Positions 16,878-44,302 of a DNA stretch of 64,000 nt are shown in pieces. A program made the translations under genes and the position numbers. The DNA comes from Lepidodermella squamata (Eukaryota > Animalia > Gastrotricha). Each line of letters opens with the position of its first letter. Position 1 is the stretch's first letter. Below the pieces are notes generated by a model. That model saw nothing but the letters and a program-made list of their open reading frames with translations, did no database searches and was not told the origin of the DNA. The stretch lies in assembly GCA_047495785.1 (NCBI GenBank), contig JBLDXI010000007.1:1674001-1738000 (forward strand), written 5' to 3'.

Positions 16878-17309
16878 TGTCGTATTTAAAGTTGATAATC
16901 ATTTATTCTTGATAATACATGGCCAAATGGCCAGAATGGCCTATGTAATGTGGATTCTCGCCCAGATTTTTGAAACCCCATGAAACCCAAGTTTGACCAC
17001 TAGGTAGAGTCGGCATCGAGGATTTCAAATCTGCATTTATTTTTTATTAAGGCAAAAAATTGGGCATGATATCGAGAAAAATCGAAAAATCGATCAGTAT
17101 CGATTTACGAAGATCGATGATTTCAGTATAGTTTGAAGGATCGTGACATCTTCCAAAATAGCGAAATTGAAATCCTCGATGCCGACTCTACCTAGTGGTC
17201 AAACTTGAGTTTCATGTGGTTTCAAAAGTCTGGGCGAAAATCCACATTACATAGGCCATTTTGGCCATGTATTATCAAGAATAAATGATTATCAACTTGA
17301 AATACGACA
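16878..17309. mobile_element. Foldback/MITE-like element with about 150-bp inverted arms
   Basis: About 16878-17028 is the near-perfect reverse complement of about 17167-17309 (e.g. tttgaccactaggtagagtcggcatcgaggatttc / gaaatcctcgatgccgactctacctagtggtcaaa). No clear TSD. Confidence 0.8.
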
Positions 17310-17639
17310 AATATAATACTCCTTAAAGTGTGTAGCCCAACCGAACGCTTTTAAAAATTCACGAGCTATTTCGGTCCGGAAACAAGACACTTATGATGCC
17401 GATGACAGATAGTATTGCTTGGAAAAACTATCGATTCAGGCCTCACCATTTTACAATTTCTGCGGATACCAGAAAAGGTGTACTTACAACAATAAAAAGT
17501 GTGGCATGGCAAATGGGACTGCGTAAAATGACTGCAAAATGACCCTTCGTGGGCTTTAGAGACGGCTTCTGAAGTTATCGTTCACTGTTTTCCAGAAAAC
17601 TTTACGTTGCTTGACGTTACGGGATATTTTTCAGTTATA

Positions 17640-18108
17640 CAGTGTGATTCAGAAATCAGAAAGGCCGCCCAAACCACGATTATTAGTATTTGTTCCCTCT
17701 TGTTTTTTTATCAAACAGTTTTTCCAAGCCCGCGCGTTCCGATTCAAAACAAAAATGTCTCGAAAAAATAATAATAGCCAAGAAATATAATGCATGGGAG
17801 CAGTGCTTGCTGTTCTTAAAAGCACTGAAAAAGCTGAAGAAAAACCTAAAACCGCTTAAAATAGGACCTAAATTTGATTGATTACTGCAAGCTTTTTTGC
17901 TATCCGTCGTGATTGGCGTGATCGAGTTGATGCTCTTAACCGGCGTCATCGGCATGATTTGTGTGATCGTCATGAAAAAAACGCCAAAATGAACGATAAT
18001 AATACGCGTTCCTTCATCACAAAAACTGATGAATCCGATCCAATTTTTTCTACGGCCGTGTCAAACACTTCCCATGATGCGCCGGGGCGCCTTTTCTGAA
18101 TCACACTG
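17640..18108. mobile_element. Non-autonomous MITE of the Tc1/mariner family at 40057
   Basis: TA|cagtgtgattc...gaatcacactg|TA. TIR sequence matches the 40057-42544 element, and both share an internal 9-bp-period array. Confidence 0.85.
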
Positions 18109-18274
18109 TAAGATAGCTTGAAGCTTTCAAAGCCTCTACTTAGCTCCGGTGTTGGGTTTCACAGCTATTTGTTCGAAGGTTGACGTTGGCGGAGAAAAAG
18201 TTTGGATTATCCCATAAAAATTGCAGCATAGGGAAAATGTGTGTACTTGGGTGATGTTGGCGGGATGGGTGATG

Positions 18275-36929: not shown

Positions 36930-39900
36930 TATTTGAGATGGATTGTTTTTGCATTTTAATTAACTCAGGCAACACTACGGTAGTATTTGAAATAAAAAAT
37001 TCCAGCGGCCGAAAACTCATTTTACATCCAGTTCAGTTGATATGACCCATTATAAGCTATGTATATGATATAAGTTTAACCGTGATATTTGTTTGCTAGA
37101 TCAGTAATGATTCGATTTTCTGTAACTTTCTTCATCATAAATGTGGTTGCTATCACCATCGCCAAATGCCAGTATTCCATTCAGTCGGATACTGTTGAGC
37201 TAAGTCCCCCTCCACGATGTCCAGAGCTCCCAAAGGTACTAACGCCCACAGATATAGACGGATTGGAAAGCGAAATGCGTTATTACTTGAACGATAATTT
37301 TGTGAAAATTATCGAGAAAAATCCCGGTGCAATCAATCTCAGGAATTCAAAAAACAAGACATTGCTCCGTGCCGCAGTTGAGAGGTCTTATGTAGATACG
37401 TTGGATTTACTACTGTCTTACAACCATACTGAACTCAATGAAGTTGACTCCTATGGTCGAACATTGCTGCACACTGCTGCCGAGGAATGTGAACCTGAGG
37501 TTATCGAGCGCCTTGTCCGAGCGATGGTCACAAAGTATCCTGACGACTATCAGAATATCATGAACCTTCGCTCAAGCTCATTGATGCAAGCTGCAGTCTC
37601 TGTTGCTGCCTCTAGTTATGACAAGACGGAAGATAACATTATCGCAGCCTTAGAGTCCCTCGTCAACATAGGAAATGCCAGCCTGGAGACTTGTACAATA
37701 CTCCGTGAATCTCCTGCGCTCATTCTACTCGAGAAGGATCGGTACAAAGCACTGGAATGGGTTTTAAAAACTCAACCACGGGTCAAGTCATTCGTTTGCC
37801 CCTATAATCAAAGAGGTTTAGCCTACGCTTGTCATACTACCACCTTGCACACTCCTGCCGAGAGCATCAGTCATTACGCCATTCGGAAAAACAAATTCGA
37901 GTTCTTCGAGAAGTTTCTCGATTTCTTGGATTTAACAGTTGAAGACTCGCTGGGACAAACTCCGCTGTGCTATGCTTGTCTTTTGGGAAACTTCACAATT
38001 TTGCGAAAAATCCTTGAAAATACTTCTGCGGTTGACCTGTTGAGCCGTTCAAAATGCCAGTTTCCAGGGCGAGAGGGCGATGAGTTTCAGCACTTGTGGG
38101 GGCCAGCGCTTCATTTGGCAGCTATCCATCGTAACACAGAAGCGGTGAAGCTTTTCATTGAAAAAGGAGTTGATGTAACAATCCGAAACTCGCTGGGAGG
38201 AACGGTGTTTCACTCCATGTCATTGTATGATGGTAGTTTGAGGAAGGATCTGATGAAATCAAGCCGAGATTTCGAGGACATGCTGCTTTTTGAAAGTGAT
38301 GCCGAATCTGAGGCTAAAATAATTGGCATGCTTCTGAGAAACGATCCATCCTTGATTCATCAAACTGACTTAGCCGCGATGACACCATACGACGTCGCCG
38401 AGGTCGCAATTTCTGATCGACATAAACCAAGCAGTTTTATGGAGGTTTTAGAATCTATCGGAGCAGCTAATCGATCTGTAAGCATTGAAAATTCAGAAGA
38501 ACATCCCATTTTCAGGGCAATCGATGAATTGTTGAGCGATAACTATTATCGCTTATGCGACGAGGCCGAAATGAATTTGACTGTGCTCGATTCCGAAGGA
38601 AGAACACCGCTATTTCGAGCGATTGACATCGGAAATGTTTACGCATTTAAAGAGATAATTTGGGCCGATAGAACGTCCAGAGTTGTCAGAGAAAAAATTG
38701 ATCCGTTCGATCAGACCCCACTTCATAGAGCGGTTTCTTTACAACGATGGGAAATGGCAAGGTATTTGGCCTATAGGTGGCCTGATCTCCTCCTAGAGCG
38801 AGATAGCTACAATCGGACTCCCATTCATTTCGCAATTCAATGCCAGGATACATTGGCTATGGAACAATTGCTGGGATACCTCGATATTAGGGTTGCCAGA
38901 AGTCTGGTTGCTGACAACACAACAAAAACTTTGCTTTCTCTTGCCGTGGAGCACAACTGCTTTTCGGCTGCTGAACTCCTGATTTCGAAGTACGAAGCAG
39001 ATCCGTATGCAACAGATGCATCCGATGGCCTGTCGCCAATAGATCGTGCAAAATCTTTAGGCTTTCGTGGCATCGCGGATTTGATGACGAGCAAGATGAA
39101 GTGCAAGACTGCAAATTACTGCAAAGTACCGCTGCAAAACTTGGGAATGACATCCCACTTCATTGTTACAGTTAGACCCGGAGAAAGGTTGCCGATAAAT
39201 GCGACGCTAACCATTCACTGGTCACCCGTAATCCTAACAAAGATTGAAGTTATGAAAACTACCTGTGTGAAGGAGCATGGTAAGTGCCCGGAGTGGATTC
39301 CGAATCCTAGAAAACGTTATGAGGTAAGAACGATTTTCCTATTAGTAAAGCGCTGAAAGCGACCTCATTACAATGTAGGATCTTACGGGAAAAGAGTTGC
39401 AAAACGCTTACATGAGTCTAAGCGACGCTGCTGCAAATGCTGACTTGCTACAGGCCAGAGATCTTATCGATAAAATAGGGATGGCGACTAACGGGAGGAT
39501 GAATTTAGCTCAGTGGCGCGATGAGAGAGAATTCAGCGATGGATTTTTTGACGCCGTTAAAACGCCGTCAATCTTTCAGCGTTTGTGTCACAGCCAGGAG
39601 GATGAGATTTTACGAATTGAGATTGCTAAGCTGTTGTTCGCGAATGGAGTCACGCTATCAGACGATGAGTACTTCTCCCCCACTCTTACAGCCTTCCGCA
39701 AGAAAAGCTATGAACTGGTAAAATTTTTTGTTAGACGAGGAGAAAATGTCACCACGGAAAGGTTTAGCCGCGAGATAAGTCAAATGAAAATCGAAGACAT
39801 TGACGTTTTGGAGTTTCTTCTAAATAATGGTCTCGACCTATCAAACCGGGATGTATTAGAAAACCAGCTTCGATTTGGTCGATTGGACGCTGTGAGATAT

Positions 39901-40270
39901 CTGGTCGAACACGGCTTGTTCCTAATTCGAGACTCTGATTTAGAAACAGCTATCGATGGTCAAGGGCATAACTACCATGCGAAGCTTCTCGAATATCTAC
40001 TCGACCAAGGGGCAAATGTCACATGGCGGAGTGCTAGAGGAACTCCCCTAGCTATACAGTGTGATTCAAAAAGGCCGCCCGACCGCATCATTTGCAGCGC
40101 GAGCCTAACCTAACGCGTGCAAAAAATTTGGCTTAAAACGCAGTAAACAGAGTTTTTCTTTCGCGAGTGATAGGCAAGAAGTGTTGGAGCTGCTCATTAA
40201 TTTTATCACTATTTATTGCTTTCTATTTTTTAATCCCAAGTTATAGCGCCGCTCAAGAATAAAAGAAACA

Positions 40271-40851
40271 TTAAGCCGCTGGATTATCCTCATCCATTTG
40301 TTCTCCTTCTTCTTCTCCCGTTTCAGCTTGTTTATTCTTTTTGGCTTGATTTTTCTTAGGGGCCGCTTGCTGTTTCTTAGCAGCGCCATTTGTGGCTTGC
40401 TTGTTGACAGCCTCGTCCGATTCCTCATCACCCTCAGCTGATGCAGCCTCCTGACCCCTTTTGCGATTTTGGGTTTTCGATTGGTGCGAACGCCAGAGCT
40501 CAGTAGCAGCTCTCGATTTCGCCTCGGCAACCCGCGTCTTGTAGAGGCGTACACATTTTTGTGTTATAGCAGTAATAGACCTGTTGAGGCGGTCGCAAAG
40601 CATCGGATAGTAATTGTTAATGTAATTGCCAACGACCGTCTCGTTCGGTGGCACTCCGACTTCAATCGCGGCTTCAACAATAGCCTCGATAGCAGCTACT
40701 TGATCCGAATTCCATTTGCTCTTTACACCATCAACTTTAAACAATGTGTTTATCGTTATATTCGTCAATAAATAATATAATATAAATTCTCACATAATTT
40801 CGCACGTTGCTTGGCATTCAACTTAGGCAATGGTGGAAAATCGGCAGACAT
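40271..40851 (-). CDS. Transposon passenger gene (173 aa): Myb/SANT-like helical domain with basic/acidic tail
   Basis: Exon 40851-40794, GTGAG..AAAG intron 40793-40735, exon 40734-40271. Gives MSADFPPLPKLNAKQRAKLFDGVKSKWNSDQVAAIE...NRSITAITQKCVRLYK. The domain call is by eye. Confidence 0.65.
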
Positions 40852-41113
40852 TTTGCAATAATTTTTCAATACGTGAGTTATAATGTGCGCTAGCTTTTTT
40901 ATTTTTTGAATATTTGCGATATTTTCTAGCTTTTTGATGCGGACGCGTGTGTGTGTTTTTTTCATGAATGAGTGTAAACGTAAATCGCTGTGATTCTCTT
41001 GATCGGCATGATCGGGGTGATGCTCTTGTTGAGCTGACTTGGCAAAAAAACGCTGGAATAATAATAACACTCGCATTTTTATTTTTCTCGCTACTCACTA
41101 CTCATAGGTAAAG

Positions 41114-42347
41114 TTAAAGTAGATGCTCAAAATGACCTCCTTTGGCCTTAACGCAGGCTTCCAGTCGTTTCTTCCAATGGAGCCTCACCTTTTGAAAAGT
41201 TGATTTTTTGATACAACTGCACGCCGCTTCGATTCGCAGCTTTAACTCGGAAATTGATTCAATTTTCGGCTTTTTAGGATCGTAAATTTTGTTTTTTAGA
41301 AATGCCCAGAGAAAAAAGTCGGGCGGCGATAAATCGGGTGACCTGGCTGGCCAGAAATGACGCTCCTTGTCGTCTTTAGTGCATCTTCCAATCCAGCGAC
41401 CATTGAATCTGCGATTTAGCCATTTTCGAACGTCACAATCAAAGTGGGCCGGAGCACCGTCCTGCTGGAAAATGATCTTGCTTCTAACAAACCATTGATT
41501 GTAACGACCTGGCGGATGAAGGGGAACTTGATTGTTCAGCGCCGGCATCACCTTAGTTTGAAGCAAATCGAGGTATGTTTTCCCATTGACGGTTATCTTC
41601 TCATCGTTTTCATCCGTGAAATAAAAGGGCCCGATCAGTTTGTTATTCAAAATTCCGCACCAGACCATCAAGGATTTCGCGCTTTGGTCTTTGATAGCAA
41701 CTGCCGTGTCGCGGCGATTTTCCTTTCTGCTTCCTTTTTTTGGTTTGATGAGCCACATTCTATTATTCTGCCTGTTGAAAAGGTTTGCAGTTGAAAACAT
41801 ACACTCATCTGTTGTTAAAATTTTCCGGAAAAAGTTTTTGTCCTCGCGTAGCATTTTCAACAACCATTTGCAGAACATTAGTCGGCGCTTAAAATCTCTC
41901 GGCAGCAAGACTTGAGTTGGAACTAGGCGATACGGATGAAGCTTCATGGCTTTCAACAACCGTTGCAGCGTTGAATACGTCAGATCCAGTTCTGGACACG
42001 AAGCACGAAGGCTGGCGAACGGGTGCTTCTCGAAATAATTCAACACCTTCTTTTTCAAACCTTTGATCTTCTTCACAATTGGAGTGCGACCTGGAATAGG
42101 TCTATTCAAACAGGAGGCTAAACGTAAGACCTTATTGACGCAAATTTTCAGATAATAACAGATAAAACTCACAGGTGGCCATGAACTTGGCATATAGGCG
42201 TTGGATGGTACGACGGTCAGGCTCTCGGCCTAACTCAGGGTAACGTTTCCTAAATTCCATTCTAGTACCCCTCCAGTCTTTGATTTTGTCATAGATCAGC
42301 ACGATATCGCGCCTTTGCTCCTTCGAATAATTCGCTCTCTTGACCAT
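41114..42347 (-). CDS. DDD transposase, DD41D/rosa-like with DD46D spacing; 2 exons, 392 aa
   Basis: HTH N-terminus YSKEQRRDIV. Intron 42172-42118 yields FMATSSCLNRPIPGRTP. Catalytic motifs TTDECMF, QQDGAPAH, WIGR..WPARSPDLSPPDFFLW. C-terminus GGHFEHLL. Confidence 0.92.
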
Positions 42348-44302
42348 ATTATTTTACTTGAAAACTTGACAATTCGATATTATACTTTTGTGATTATGCG
42401 TGCTTGTTGTGATTTTCCTATTTTTCCTATTTTTTTTGAGTTGTTTATCTTCGACATAATAAAGCCACGCGATTTTTATGAGGCAAAAAATTCTACGACG
42501 CAGAGCCCTGACGATGGGTTGGGCGGCCTTTTAGAATCACACTGTACTTGCATGTTACAAGAATTGCGGCCTATCGTTTATGCAGTTATTGGAAAGTCGC
42601 GGCGTTGATCTTATGAATGTGCGCAATTCCGGAGGCACAGATTTACTGGCATACGGTGGGGTAGATCTTGTTTCTTACCTCATTAGTAAAGGAGCAGATG
42701 TTAATCGCGCAAATGATTTCGGTATGACTGCAGTAATGCATGCCGCTTCGTTCAACATAATGCAACTCGTGAAGCTGCTAATAAAACATGGTGCTGTTCT
42801 AAACCACAGAAATGCCGATGGAAATTCAGCTTTAATGATAGCAGCTAGAGATGGGGCGGTCGAAATGACTAGGCTGCTTCTGGACAATGGCGCCAGCGAG
42901 TTGGACGAAGCTCTCAATCTCGCAGCCCGTTACAAGGAACGTCTCACAGCTAAGCTGATGATCCACAGAGGAGCAAGGAAGGATTCCTGCACTGACGAAT
43001 TTTGCTCTACCATTTGATCGGCGAGTCATCTTGCTTTTCAAATCTCCTACATGAACTCAGTATTATCTATTATCGATGAATGATGAAAATAGGATATTTC
43101 AGCCACACCACGAGAAAAGAGCTCATATATTGAATTTTCGTTTTTTTCTAATATTGCACCCACCTGTTCGCTATTTTGCAACTAGACCTACCTGGTTTCC
43201 AGCAAGTTTTTTCTTTCCTCAGCAAATTTTCTCGCTTTCCCATTTCCCAGTAAAACTTCTTTCATCAGGAATGGGGTCTTTTTACCAGTTAATTTACTTG
43301 CTTTGTCAGTAATTTTAAAACAACTCGCAGAATTACAAAAATATGTCCAAAATTGTTGGCCGCTTTCCTTGTTCCCGAAAATGTTTGTATAAGTACCTCT
43401 TTTAAAAGAAAAAAATCAAGAGGTAAAAAGTTTGAAAATCAAGTCCGCTTGGTCAGTTATTTCGGTTTCAGAAAAAATTGCTGTTGGAGCGCTTTGGCAA
43501 GCCCACATCCGACTGCATGAATACGCGCAAACCCAGGTGACAACCCGAGTGCGGCGCAGAAAACAAGTAGGCTAGTGTATTGCTGCAGGCGCGCTTACCT
43601 CGGCCGGGTTCGGGCATCGGCATTGTATCCGAGTGCGGAGAGCAAAGATAACAAGCGCGGTTATCGAGGTCCACACCGCGGGTTCAGGAGGTCATGGGCC
43701 CTGAGTCCATACTAGAAAAAAACACGAGAAAAGTAGTACTTGATAAAACTCTCTTCGTTCGGGTCTTGAGATATTAGGAGCAAGAGCCCATAGCCCAGAC
43801 ACTTCCCAGGCAGAAATAATAGGGCAAAAAGCTGTAAGACTAGCACGTGGCATAATTTCTTGTTCCCAAAATATTGACCGAAAAAATCTGGTCGTTTTCA
43901 ATTACTCTATTAAACAGGCTCCATCGCGCGATTTTCTCGGTCAAATCGGTAAAAGCGACGCGCTATTTTTGAATAACCTTGTTACTAGGTCAAACTTGTT
44001 AACAGCCTTGGACGACATTGTGACAAGGGGAAAGCTGAAAGAGATATGCGCTTGATAACCCGGATTATTTGAGCCCTCAGCAGGCTAAATTTATTGTGAT
44101 TTCAGTCGTACGGGGGTGGTGTTTGGACGTTCCTCGCGATGCAGACTAATTAAAGATTACAGAAACATCAGCGATGTGATAAATGGGCAATCACAGAACA
44201 GAACACGTCGTCCACGTCGCACTTTAGGGTTCACAAAGCTGTATAATTACCTCAAACGCAAGATGTCAAAGATGAGGTGGTAATTCTCAGTTATATGAAA
44301 TT

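Follow-up and report, generated by a model that had tools for sequence, protein, structure and literature searches.

A two-gene Tc1/mariner element in Lepidodermella squamata and its DD46D clade, with a second gene that may be an inherited accessory gene

Insertion site and gene structure of the element

A 64,000-nt stretch of the gastrotrich Lepidodermella squamata (GenBank assembly GCA_047495785.1, contig JBLDXI010000007.1, positions 1,674,001 to 1,738,000 of the forward strand; hereafter the window) was analyzed, in which positions 40057–42544 are occupied by a 2,488-bp Tc1/mariner element that carries two genes on the minus strand, a transposase and a smaller second gene, here termed open reading frame 2 (ORF2). 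The element is bounded by terminal inverted repeats (TIRs), recognized by their pairing, at the genes' 3′ end (40057–40084, CAGTGTGATTCAAAAAGG...) and at the genes' 5′ end (42517–42544). Including the flanking TA, 30 nt are paired (40055–40084 versus 42517–42546) with a complementarity of 93%. The TA target-site duplication lies at 40055–40056 on the left and 42545–42546 on the right, as indicated by the flank sequences and by the single TA in an empty-site contig. For the 24-nt terminal pattern, 0.00 chance matches are expected in the window; allowing up to three mismatches, it was found across the whole window only at both ends of the element and at one end of a small related element (18085–18108). 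The termini TACAGTGTG are common to the relatives L001, L009, L016, and L005. The features that define the IS630/Tc1/mariner superfamily (TA duplication, short TIRs, a DDE_3-type triad, and an N-terminal helix-turn-helix, HTH) are all present.

The insertion interrupts a host ankyrin-repeat exon on the plus strand, which runs upstream of the insertion at 39397–40056 and resumes at 42547–43017. In silico excision of the element together with one TA restores a single open 376-codon ankyrin-repeat ORF, and both flanking halves match Ank families in Pfam. The contigs of two public sequencing runs were compared with the window, namely X1, the likely source run, in which 66% of the words sampled from the element are found, and X2, from the same or a very close species, in which the host flank is matched at 99–100%. 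The empty-site joint, running from 40054 directly to 42545 and skipping 2,490 letters, is present in contigs of both runs, while the filled left junction is spanned by an X1 contig (40014–40351). The presence of both filled and empty sites shows that the insertion at 40057–42544 is recent and still polymorphic, or heterozygous. Several X1 contigs run out of the element ends into different flanks, with at least three other insertion flanks, which makes the element multi-copy; ORF2 DNA is likewise multi-copy in X1, at a depth similar to that of the transposase. The original prediction, made before this analysis from the letters of the window, had described TIRs, a TA duplication, a restorable host frame, and a recent insertion, all of which are borne out by the 93% pairing over 30 nt, the 376-codon frame, and the empty and filled contigs. 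Internally deleted derivatives also occur in X1, with joints at 40590→41682 (16 filler letters), 42037→42444, 42043→42165, and 42200→42447, along with a sequence family that diverges directly after the TIR at 40091.

The transposase gene is composed of two exons. Exon 1 (42347–42173, minus strand; 58 codons plus 1 nt) encodes the DUF4817 helix-turn-helix, matching PF16087 with 25.0 bits against a Pfam cut-off of 22.6. A 55-bp phase 1 intron (42172–42118, GTGAGT...TTTAG) is followed by exon 2 (42117–41114, minus strand; 333 aa plus stop), which encodes a second HTH and the DDE_3 core with D162, D278, and D325; the Pfam match to DDE_3 is weak, at 21.6 bits, below the gathering score of 28.6. The spliced product is 392 aa long, and the window copy is free of stops and frameshifts. 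It aligns gap-free over the exon junction with intronless relatives, and an intron is situated at the same place in three relatives (L001, L008/L010). Colinearity over the junction and the same-place introns indicate that the intron is real by homology, in agreement with the 392-aa transposase and 55-bp intron proposed originally. Among the transposase variants listed from other X1 copies, 8 are synonymous and 7 nonsynonymous, one of the latter being a stop.

Past the transposase stop, a 262-bp inter-gene spacer (40852–41113), which presumably contains the promoter of ORF2, leads to the second gene, encoded by the same strand. Exon 1 (40851–40794, minus strand; 19 codons plus 1 nt), identified from the ORF and the splice signals, contains a PPLP motif. 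A predicted 59-bp phase 1 intron (40793–40735, GTGAGA...AAAG) is followed by exon 2 (40734–40271, minus strand; 153 aa plus stop), encoding a predicted helical domain, a Lys-rich stretch, and an acidic tail. An AATAAA hexamer 54 nt past the ORF2 stop (40212–40217, minus strand) is a possible polyadenylation signal, and a separate AATAAA is found 31 nt past the transposase stop (41078–41083, minus strand). The predicted spliced product has 173 aa. If unspliced, the ATG frame is only 32 codons long, and no ATG precedes the helical domain in the long frame. As in the unspliced gene of L009, the proline motif (D-F-P-P-L-P), here in exon 1, is followed at a comparable distance by the domain, here in exon 2, and the motif also precedes the domain in L016; this order lends indirect support to the predicted splice and, apart from the splice-site signals, is the sole support for it. 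As far as can be read from the DNA, the tandem same-strand gene of 173 aa with a 59-bp intron had been placed correctly, and the Lys-rich, then acidic tail attributed to it is present as well (12 K+R and 15 D+E in residues 106–173).

The 64-kb window has no second full copy of the element, just a 469-bp non-coding element at 17640–18108, flanked by TA at 17638–17639 and 18109–18110, with TIRs (CAGTGTGATTCAGAAA...) related to those of the two-gene element. It is probably a miniature inverted-repeat transposable element (MITE) that the transposase of the two-gene element, or a sister of it, mobilizes. When inspected by eye, the interior of the MITE looks like the inter-gene spacer of the two-gene element, for which blastn gave no confirmation. 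Just upstream of the MITE, a foldback-like element (16878–17309) is composed of arms of about 150 nt, 95–98% complementary, and a 138-nt centre.

A clade of two-gene relatives

The protein database search retrieved 1,990 relatives of the transposase at E ≤ 1e-5, the best with an E-value of 5.9e-70 and an identity of 43%; a metagenome scan with the transposase was blank. A profile of the window transposase and P0001 found the relatives P0123 (51% identity) and P0124, and further copies were obtained by cluster look-up. D162, D278, and D325 are invariant among 112 aligned relatives. Between the second and third aspartates lie 46 residues in the window transposase, P0001, and P0124, and 41 in 103 of the 112 relatives, the DD46D spacing being due to a 5-residue insertion common to the whole clade to which the window element belongs. 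That clade was recovered in a maximum-likelihood tree of 52 transposases, in which the relatives are unnamed metagenome or Logan proteins: the window transposase, P0123/P0201, P0124, and P0001/P0198 group together with a support of 100/100 (ultrafast bootstrap/SH-like approximate likelihood ratio test) on a long stem. It comprises four element types, three of them from metagenome or Logan contigs, and is nested among relatives with DD41D spacing, which makes it a derived offshoot and not a canonical DD41D member.

A same-strand second gene downstream of the transposase is present in all four element types of the clade, in each member with a contig that extends beyond the transposase. The L009 element (2,783 bp) has perfect 24-nt TIRs (TACAGTGTGTTCC...), an intronless transposase, and an ORF2 of 193 aa at 1586–2167. 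The L016 element (2,563 bp) has a transposase with an intron and a spliced ORF2 of 186 aa with a 53-bp intron. The L001 element (2,184 bp) is a derivative of the L016 type: a comparison of L001:279-2462 with L016:236-2798 revealed a 379-bp internal deletion by which ORF2 has lost its helical domain, with a truncated yet open frame of 129 aa remaining. The view that the short ORF2 of L001 is unrelated to that of the window was rejected once L016 exposed L001 as a deletion derivative without the ORF2 domain. The transposase closest to that of the window (50% identity) is found in L010, whose contig ends early; its ORF2 consists of an 18-codon exon, a 62-bp intron, and a second exon still open after 98 codons, where the contig breaks off, giving a partial spliced product of 116 aa. 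The L008 contig stops 116 bp after the transposase, with no TIR there, and the L017 copy has shorter products of both genes (a 278-aa transposase and a 151-aa ORF2). Clade members with a transposase intron also have an ORF2 intron. Several octamer-like repeats (TTTGCATA / TTGCATAT) are located in the inter-gene spacers of L001 (1650–1770), L008 (1400–1495), and L010 (7020–7105) and may be promoter elements of the second gene; the spacer in the window is free of them.

Outside the clade, the delimited relatives are single-gene elements, L005 and L003 spanning 1.77 kb and 1.9 kb, respectively, including both TIRs, the right one of which follows shortly after the transposase stop, and most other matches are on contigs of 1.2–1.6 kb with no space for a second gene. 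The host genes are those of animals, including Neuralized, NF-X1/R3H, and carboxylesterase on the contigs of the relatives and a Cys-loop receptor, a G protein-coupled receptor, and a UDP-glycosyltransferase in the window. Copies of the L009 type (L009, L011–L015) were found in six samples (SRR10912798/803/804, ERZ27332993, ERZ27333047, ERZ23486764); they have perfect TIRs and differ by 0–4 nt, being 99.8–100% identical over 2.8 kb. Such small differences imply that these copies moved very recently and leave the ratio of nonsynonymous to synonymous substitution rates uninformative; the L009-type elements look currently active.

DD41D Tc1/mariner elements with an N-terminal DUF4817 HTH correspond to the group called Visitor/rosa (PMC5490172, PMC8472432, bioRxiv 10.1101/2022.10.13.512200). 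Kinship with this group, judged via the DD41D-spaced relatives, is suggested by the TA target, TIRs starting with CAGTGT, a transposase of about 350–390 aa, the combination of DUF4817 and DDE_3, and the D,D,D triad. In contrast to Visitor/rosa, the elements of the clade exhibit a spacing of 46 instead of 41, a length of 2.2–2.8 kb instead of about 1.3–1.9 kb, and a second gene.

Fold and sequence relationships of the second protein

ORF2 is confidently predicted to fold into a helical bundle, which appears to be of the homeodomain-like class. AlphaFold2 (AF2), run on the single sequence of the window ORF2, assigned a predicted local distance difference test (pLDDT) score above 90 to 76 residues and placed helices at 9–25, 31–41, 45–49, and a long one at 53–99 (exon 2 numbering), followed by the disordered Lys-rich and acidic tail. 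Helix 1 begins with W27, part of a W-x-x-x-Q-V pattern that is matched colinearly in L016. The positions that would correspond to the later aromatic (Trp) core residues of Myb are Tyr/Leu, at a spacing above the canonical 19–21.

The second gene had originally been called Myb/SANT-like, a designation that the searches did not uphold. Against Pfam, the window ORF2 returned just noise, with no Myb/SANT family at E ≤ 1, and the ORF2s of L009, L016, and L010 matched no Myb/SANT/MADF/trihelix family at E ≤ 5. Language-model neighbours of the window ORF2 include Myb_Rap1 and Myb_DNA-binding clusters, at only 0.76–0.79, and the neighbours of the homologous domain of L016 gave no Myb lead. Foldseek with the ORF2 model yielded no significant match, and the ESM Atlas, queried by features and by shape, nothing above chance level. 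Matches to PDB sequences, HMG-D among them, were only compositional. A word-indexed search of 5.8 billion proteins found no relative of ORF2, and a metagenome scan was blank. Exhaustive phmmer against 1.84 billion representatives found no true relative either: its two matches, P0121 and P0122 (E 3e-8 and 4e-7), are long translated tandem or satellite repeats and were dismissed as false positives, their E-values being spurious because they are summed from many repeated weak matches. We also considered ORF2 as a diverged copy of the DUF4817 domain of the transposase, given by-eye resemblances (Y-S-K-E-Q to W-N-S-D-Q and RLYAKF to RLYKTR), and rejected it, as a profile of 112 N-termini ranked ORF2 481st among 2,000 shuffles.

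Regarding the relationships among the second genes, the ORF2s of L009 and L016 are clearly homologous judging by their alignment (BLASTP E 1.7e-9, 35% identity over 80 aa, Smith–Waterman score z 14.9 versus shuffles), with transposases that are 49% identical. They have in common, in order, an acidic run, a D/E-x-P-P/N-L-P motif, and a helical domain with K-H-L, N-L-K, Y-x-E, and D-x-S-x-x-S-S-K-V. The similarity of the window ORF2 to both is marginal. Against L009, BLASTP gave E 0.021–0.022 over the last helices, ending in E-x-W-R-S; the local Smith–Waterman score was 45 versus 23.8 ± 4.4, reached by 1 of 2,000 shuffles; and a colinear semi-global alignment including the exon 1 motif scored 46 versus 13.3 ± 5.9, reached by 1 of 3,000 shuffles and pairing D-F-P-P-L-P-K-L-N-A-K of exon 1 with D-L-P-P-I-R-A-N-A-R of L009. 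With a hidden Markov model of L009 and L016, the window ORF2 ranked 27th by whole sequence and 2nd by best domain out of 5,001. The window transposase shares only 40–43% identity with its counterparts in L009 and L016, and at this distance, together with the faster evolution of ORF2, similarity in the twilight zone is what common descent would lead one to expect; all four ORF2s probably go back to one ancestral gene. A circular permutation was suggested by MAFFT, which aligned the charged tail of the window ORF2 (106–173) with the charged N-terminal half of L009 (22–99), and L001 likewise; this resemblance is compositional, 17 of 2,000 shuffles reaching its score.

Possible roles of the second gene and relation to known systems

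We interpret the insertion as an intact, recently transposed, autonomous Tc1/mariner element of a two-gene DD46D clade, the ORF2 of which would be an inherited accessory gene encoding a helper that acts in trans, and we assign this interpretation as a whole a probability of roughly 55%. That ORF2 is an inherited, fast-evolving accessory gene is the most likely account of its origin. A one-off capture is at odds with the second gene in four of four clade element types and with the multi-copy ORF2 DNA in X1, and "passenger", the term used in the original prediction, is probably the wrong word for a gene that appears to have been inherited with the clade and not picked up by the window copy. Under this interpretation, a single acquisition would have brought ORF2 into the ancestor of the DD46D clade, an offshoot of the DD41D-type group. 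The gene would have been kept since, changing more rapidly than the transposase and transcribed separately from a promoter of its own, with an intron and a poly(A) signal; its intact frame in four long-diverged lineages argues for retention. The product would be a small nuclear protein with a PPxLP motif, a domain of about 80 aa of a nucleic-acid- or chromatin-binding type, and a basic, then acidic tail. A nuclear DNA- or chromatin-binding or adaptor role is suggested by the DNA-binding-type helical domain, the basic stretch (possibly for nuclear import), the acidic tail like those of chromatin proteins, and the proline motif, which is presumably of the kind bound by SH3/WW/EVH1 modules. The original prediction had proposed an aid to transposition, targeting, or anti-silencing. 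The protein would act in trans on the element's own transposition, most likely as a helper or adaptor binding element DNA or chromatin and/or the transposase, and internally deleted copies without ORF2 could be mobilized in trans. The stronger proposal that ORF2 is required for transposition or strongly modulates it, for example as a binder of element DNA or chromatin that recruits or imports the transposase, which would make this a true two-component animal Tc1/mariner clade, is tentative, and we hold it to be rather doubtful.

Several observations weigh against the helper interpretation. No family assignment was found for any ORF2 of the clade, and the AF2 model of the L009 ORF2, which was left out of the fold search, is of low confidence (mean pLDDT 55). 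For the window ORF2, hhalign gave a P of 0.036 and a probability of 1.4%, BLASTP against L016 an E-value of 0.17, and the comparison with the partial ORF2 of L010, the closest element, no signal (z −0.3). Nor does the partial L010 ORF2 significantly resemble those of L009 and L016, so independent acquisitions at the same position are possible, and the best p-values for the window ORF2 are somewhat optimistic because several comparisons were tried. No sign of purifying selection on ORF2 was seen in the L009-type copies, in which four of four ORF2 differences are nonsynonymous, or among the X1 variants listed, in which the single ORF2 variant of the window family is also nonsynonymous. Some X1 copies have frame-breaking ORF2 deletions (13 nt; 2+2+1 nt), and another lacks 40591–41681, replaced by 16 filler letters, so that half of ORF2 is gone. 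In X2, the TIRs and most of the transposase are covered, and depth is zero over 40235–40983, i.e., all of ORF2; this may mean that the X2 copies are deletion derivatives, or that ORF2 is absent from X2 or has diverged further. Among the listed public runs holding the element, no RNA run is on record, and the ORF2 splice is a predicted one. Finally, sequence alone cannot separate a helper from a brake or a shield, and the functional role is pure inference.

Part of this evidence would fit a clade whose 3′ region is a permissive site at which unrelated ORFs were captured or arose repeatedly, with the window ORF2 a lineage-specific passenger or a de novo ORF without a role for the element and its likeness to L009 and L016 a product of chance and composition. 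The missing signal against L010, the hhalign probability, the lack of demonstrable purifying selection, the deleted and frame-broken copies, and the absence of ORF2 from X2 contigs all point that way, as does the failure to find a significant relative among the 1.84 billion representatives or in the word-indexed search. Such a site is nevertheless improbable in our view: a gene occupies this position, on the transposase strand, in all four clade members, introns co-occur in both genes, and single-gene relatives have no such 3′ space. Moreover, the L009 and L016 ORF2s are clearly homologous across transposases that are 49% identical, the window ORF2 is colinear with them in motif and domain (p around 0.0004–0.02), and a high-confidence AF2 fold from one sequence is unusual for a random ORF. 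The last point also speaks against ORF2 being no gene at all, namely a 165-codon open frame with a fortuitous GT...AG in what would be the 3′ untranslated region of an element with one gene, as do the colinearity of the exon 1 motif and domain with L009 and L016 and the separate AATAAA hexamers after ORF2 and after the transposase stop. An open frame of such length is improbable at 43% G+C (an estimate of ~0.94^165, 4e-5 per start), and the region is 1.0 kb longer than the entire 3′ part of single-gene relatives; even with a predicted splice, no RNA run, and no database relative, a chance frame strikes us as very improbable.

A further alternative accepts ORF2 as a real gene of the element and changes its sign: it could be a brake, damping transposition by binding DNA or the transposase, or a shield that counters host silencing. 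Tc1/mariner is the textbook one-protein transposon, whose transposase is generally sufficient alone, so that the need for a helper is not obvious. A brake or shield would draw on the same basis as a helper, i.e., the predicted fold and the clade-wide retention, from which present data do not separate it, and the faster divergence of ORF2 relative to the transposase (35% versus 49% identity between L009 and L016, with the window ORF2 in the twilight zone) is the pattern that a protein in conflict with host factors would be expected to show, as are the four of four nonsynonymous recent substitutions. However, the simplest route to a competitor would be a likeness to the DUF4817 domain of the transposase, of which ORF2 shows none (rank 481 among 2,000 shuffles). 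Overall, we consider a brake or shield unlikely.

Tc1/mariner elements have spread widely by horizontal transfer and serve as tools for gene transfer (Sleeping Beauty, Mos1, Himar1), both of which have been attributed to their independence from host and accessory factors. In PIF/Harbinger elements, a DDE transposase and a Myb/SANT-like protein are both required (PMC4482050, PMC5543537). The proposed helper role would be functionally analogous to that of the second PIF/Harbinger protein, and as in those elements, two genes, inferred here to be separately transcribed, lie within one TIR pair, the second encoding a small helical protein of a DNA-binding type. In contrast, the transposases belong to unrelated superfamilies, the window element has a TA duplication and Tc1/mariner TIRs where Harbinger has a 3-bp (TWA) duplication, and ORF2 is without a Myb/SANT match in Pfam. 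Extra ORFs beside a DDE transposase are known from the IS630/Tc1/mariner elements of ciliates, namely TBE and Tec (PMC7325037, PMC4724952) and Sardine, Thon, Anchois, and Tennessee (PMC3464196), and the three ORFs of TBE are under purifying selection (PMC4724952). The window clade resembles the TBE/Tec/Anchois-type elements in having an extra ORF beside a Tc1/mariner-superfamily transposase. The ciliate elements differ in being germline elements of 3.6–6.7 kb with two or three extra ORFs (a zinc-finger protein, a tyrosine recombinase, and hypotheticals), DD34E/DD35E transposases, and other TIR structures, whereas the window clade has animal hosts, one small extra gene, and a DDD transposase. 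In a literature search of incomplete coverage, we found no report of a second gene conserved across a clade of animal Tc1/mariner elements, extra ORFs being described for ciliate elements only.

If ORF2 does nothing, it would still be a persistent orphan gene carried by a DNA transposon. If it aids or controls transposition, it would bear on element regulation, targeting, protection from silencing, and possibly tool design, and both the window copy and the L009 type, with its perfect TIRs and near-identical copies, are recently active, intact elements suited to direct functional testing. A monophyletic animal clade that has kept a second gene through deep divergence (transposases 40–50% identical) would mean that accessory functions evolve in Tc1/mariner elements outside ciliates too, and a true two-component clade would break the rule that these elements need a transposase only.

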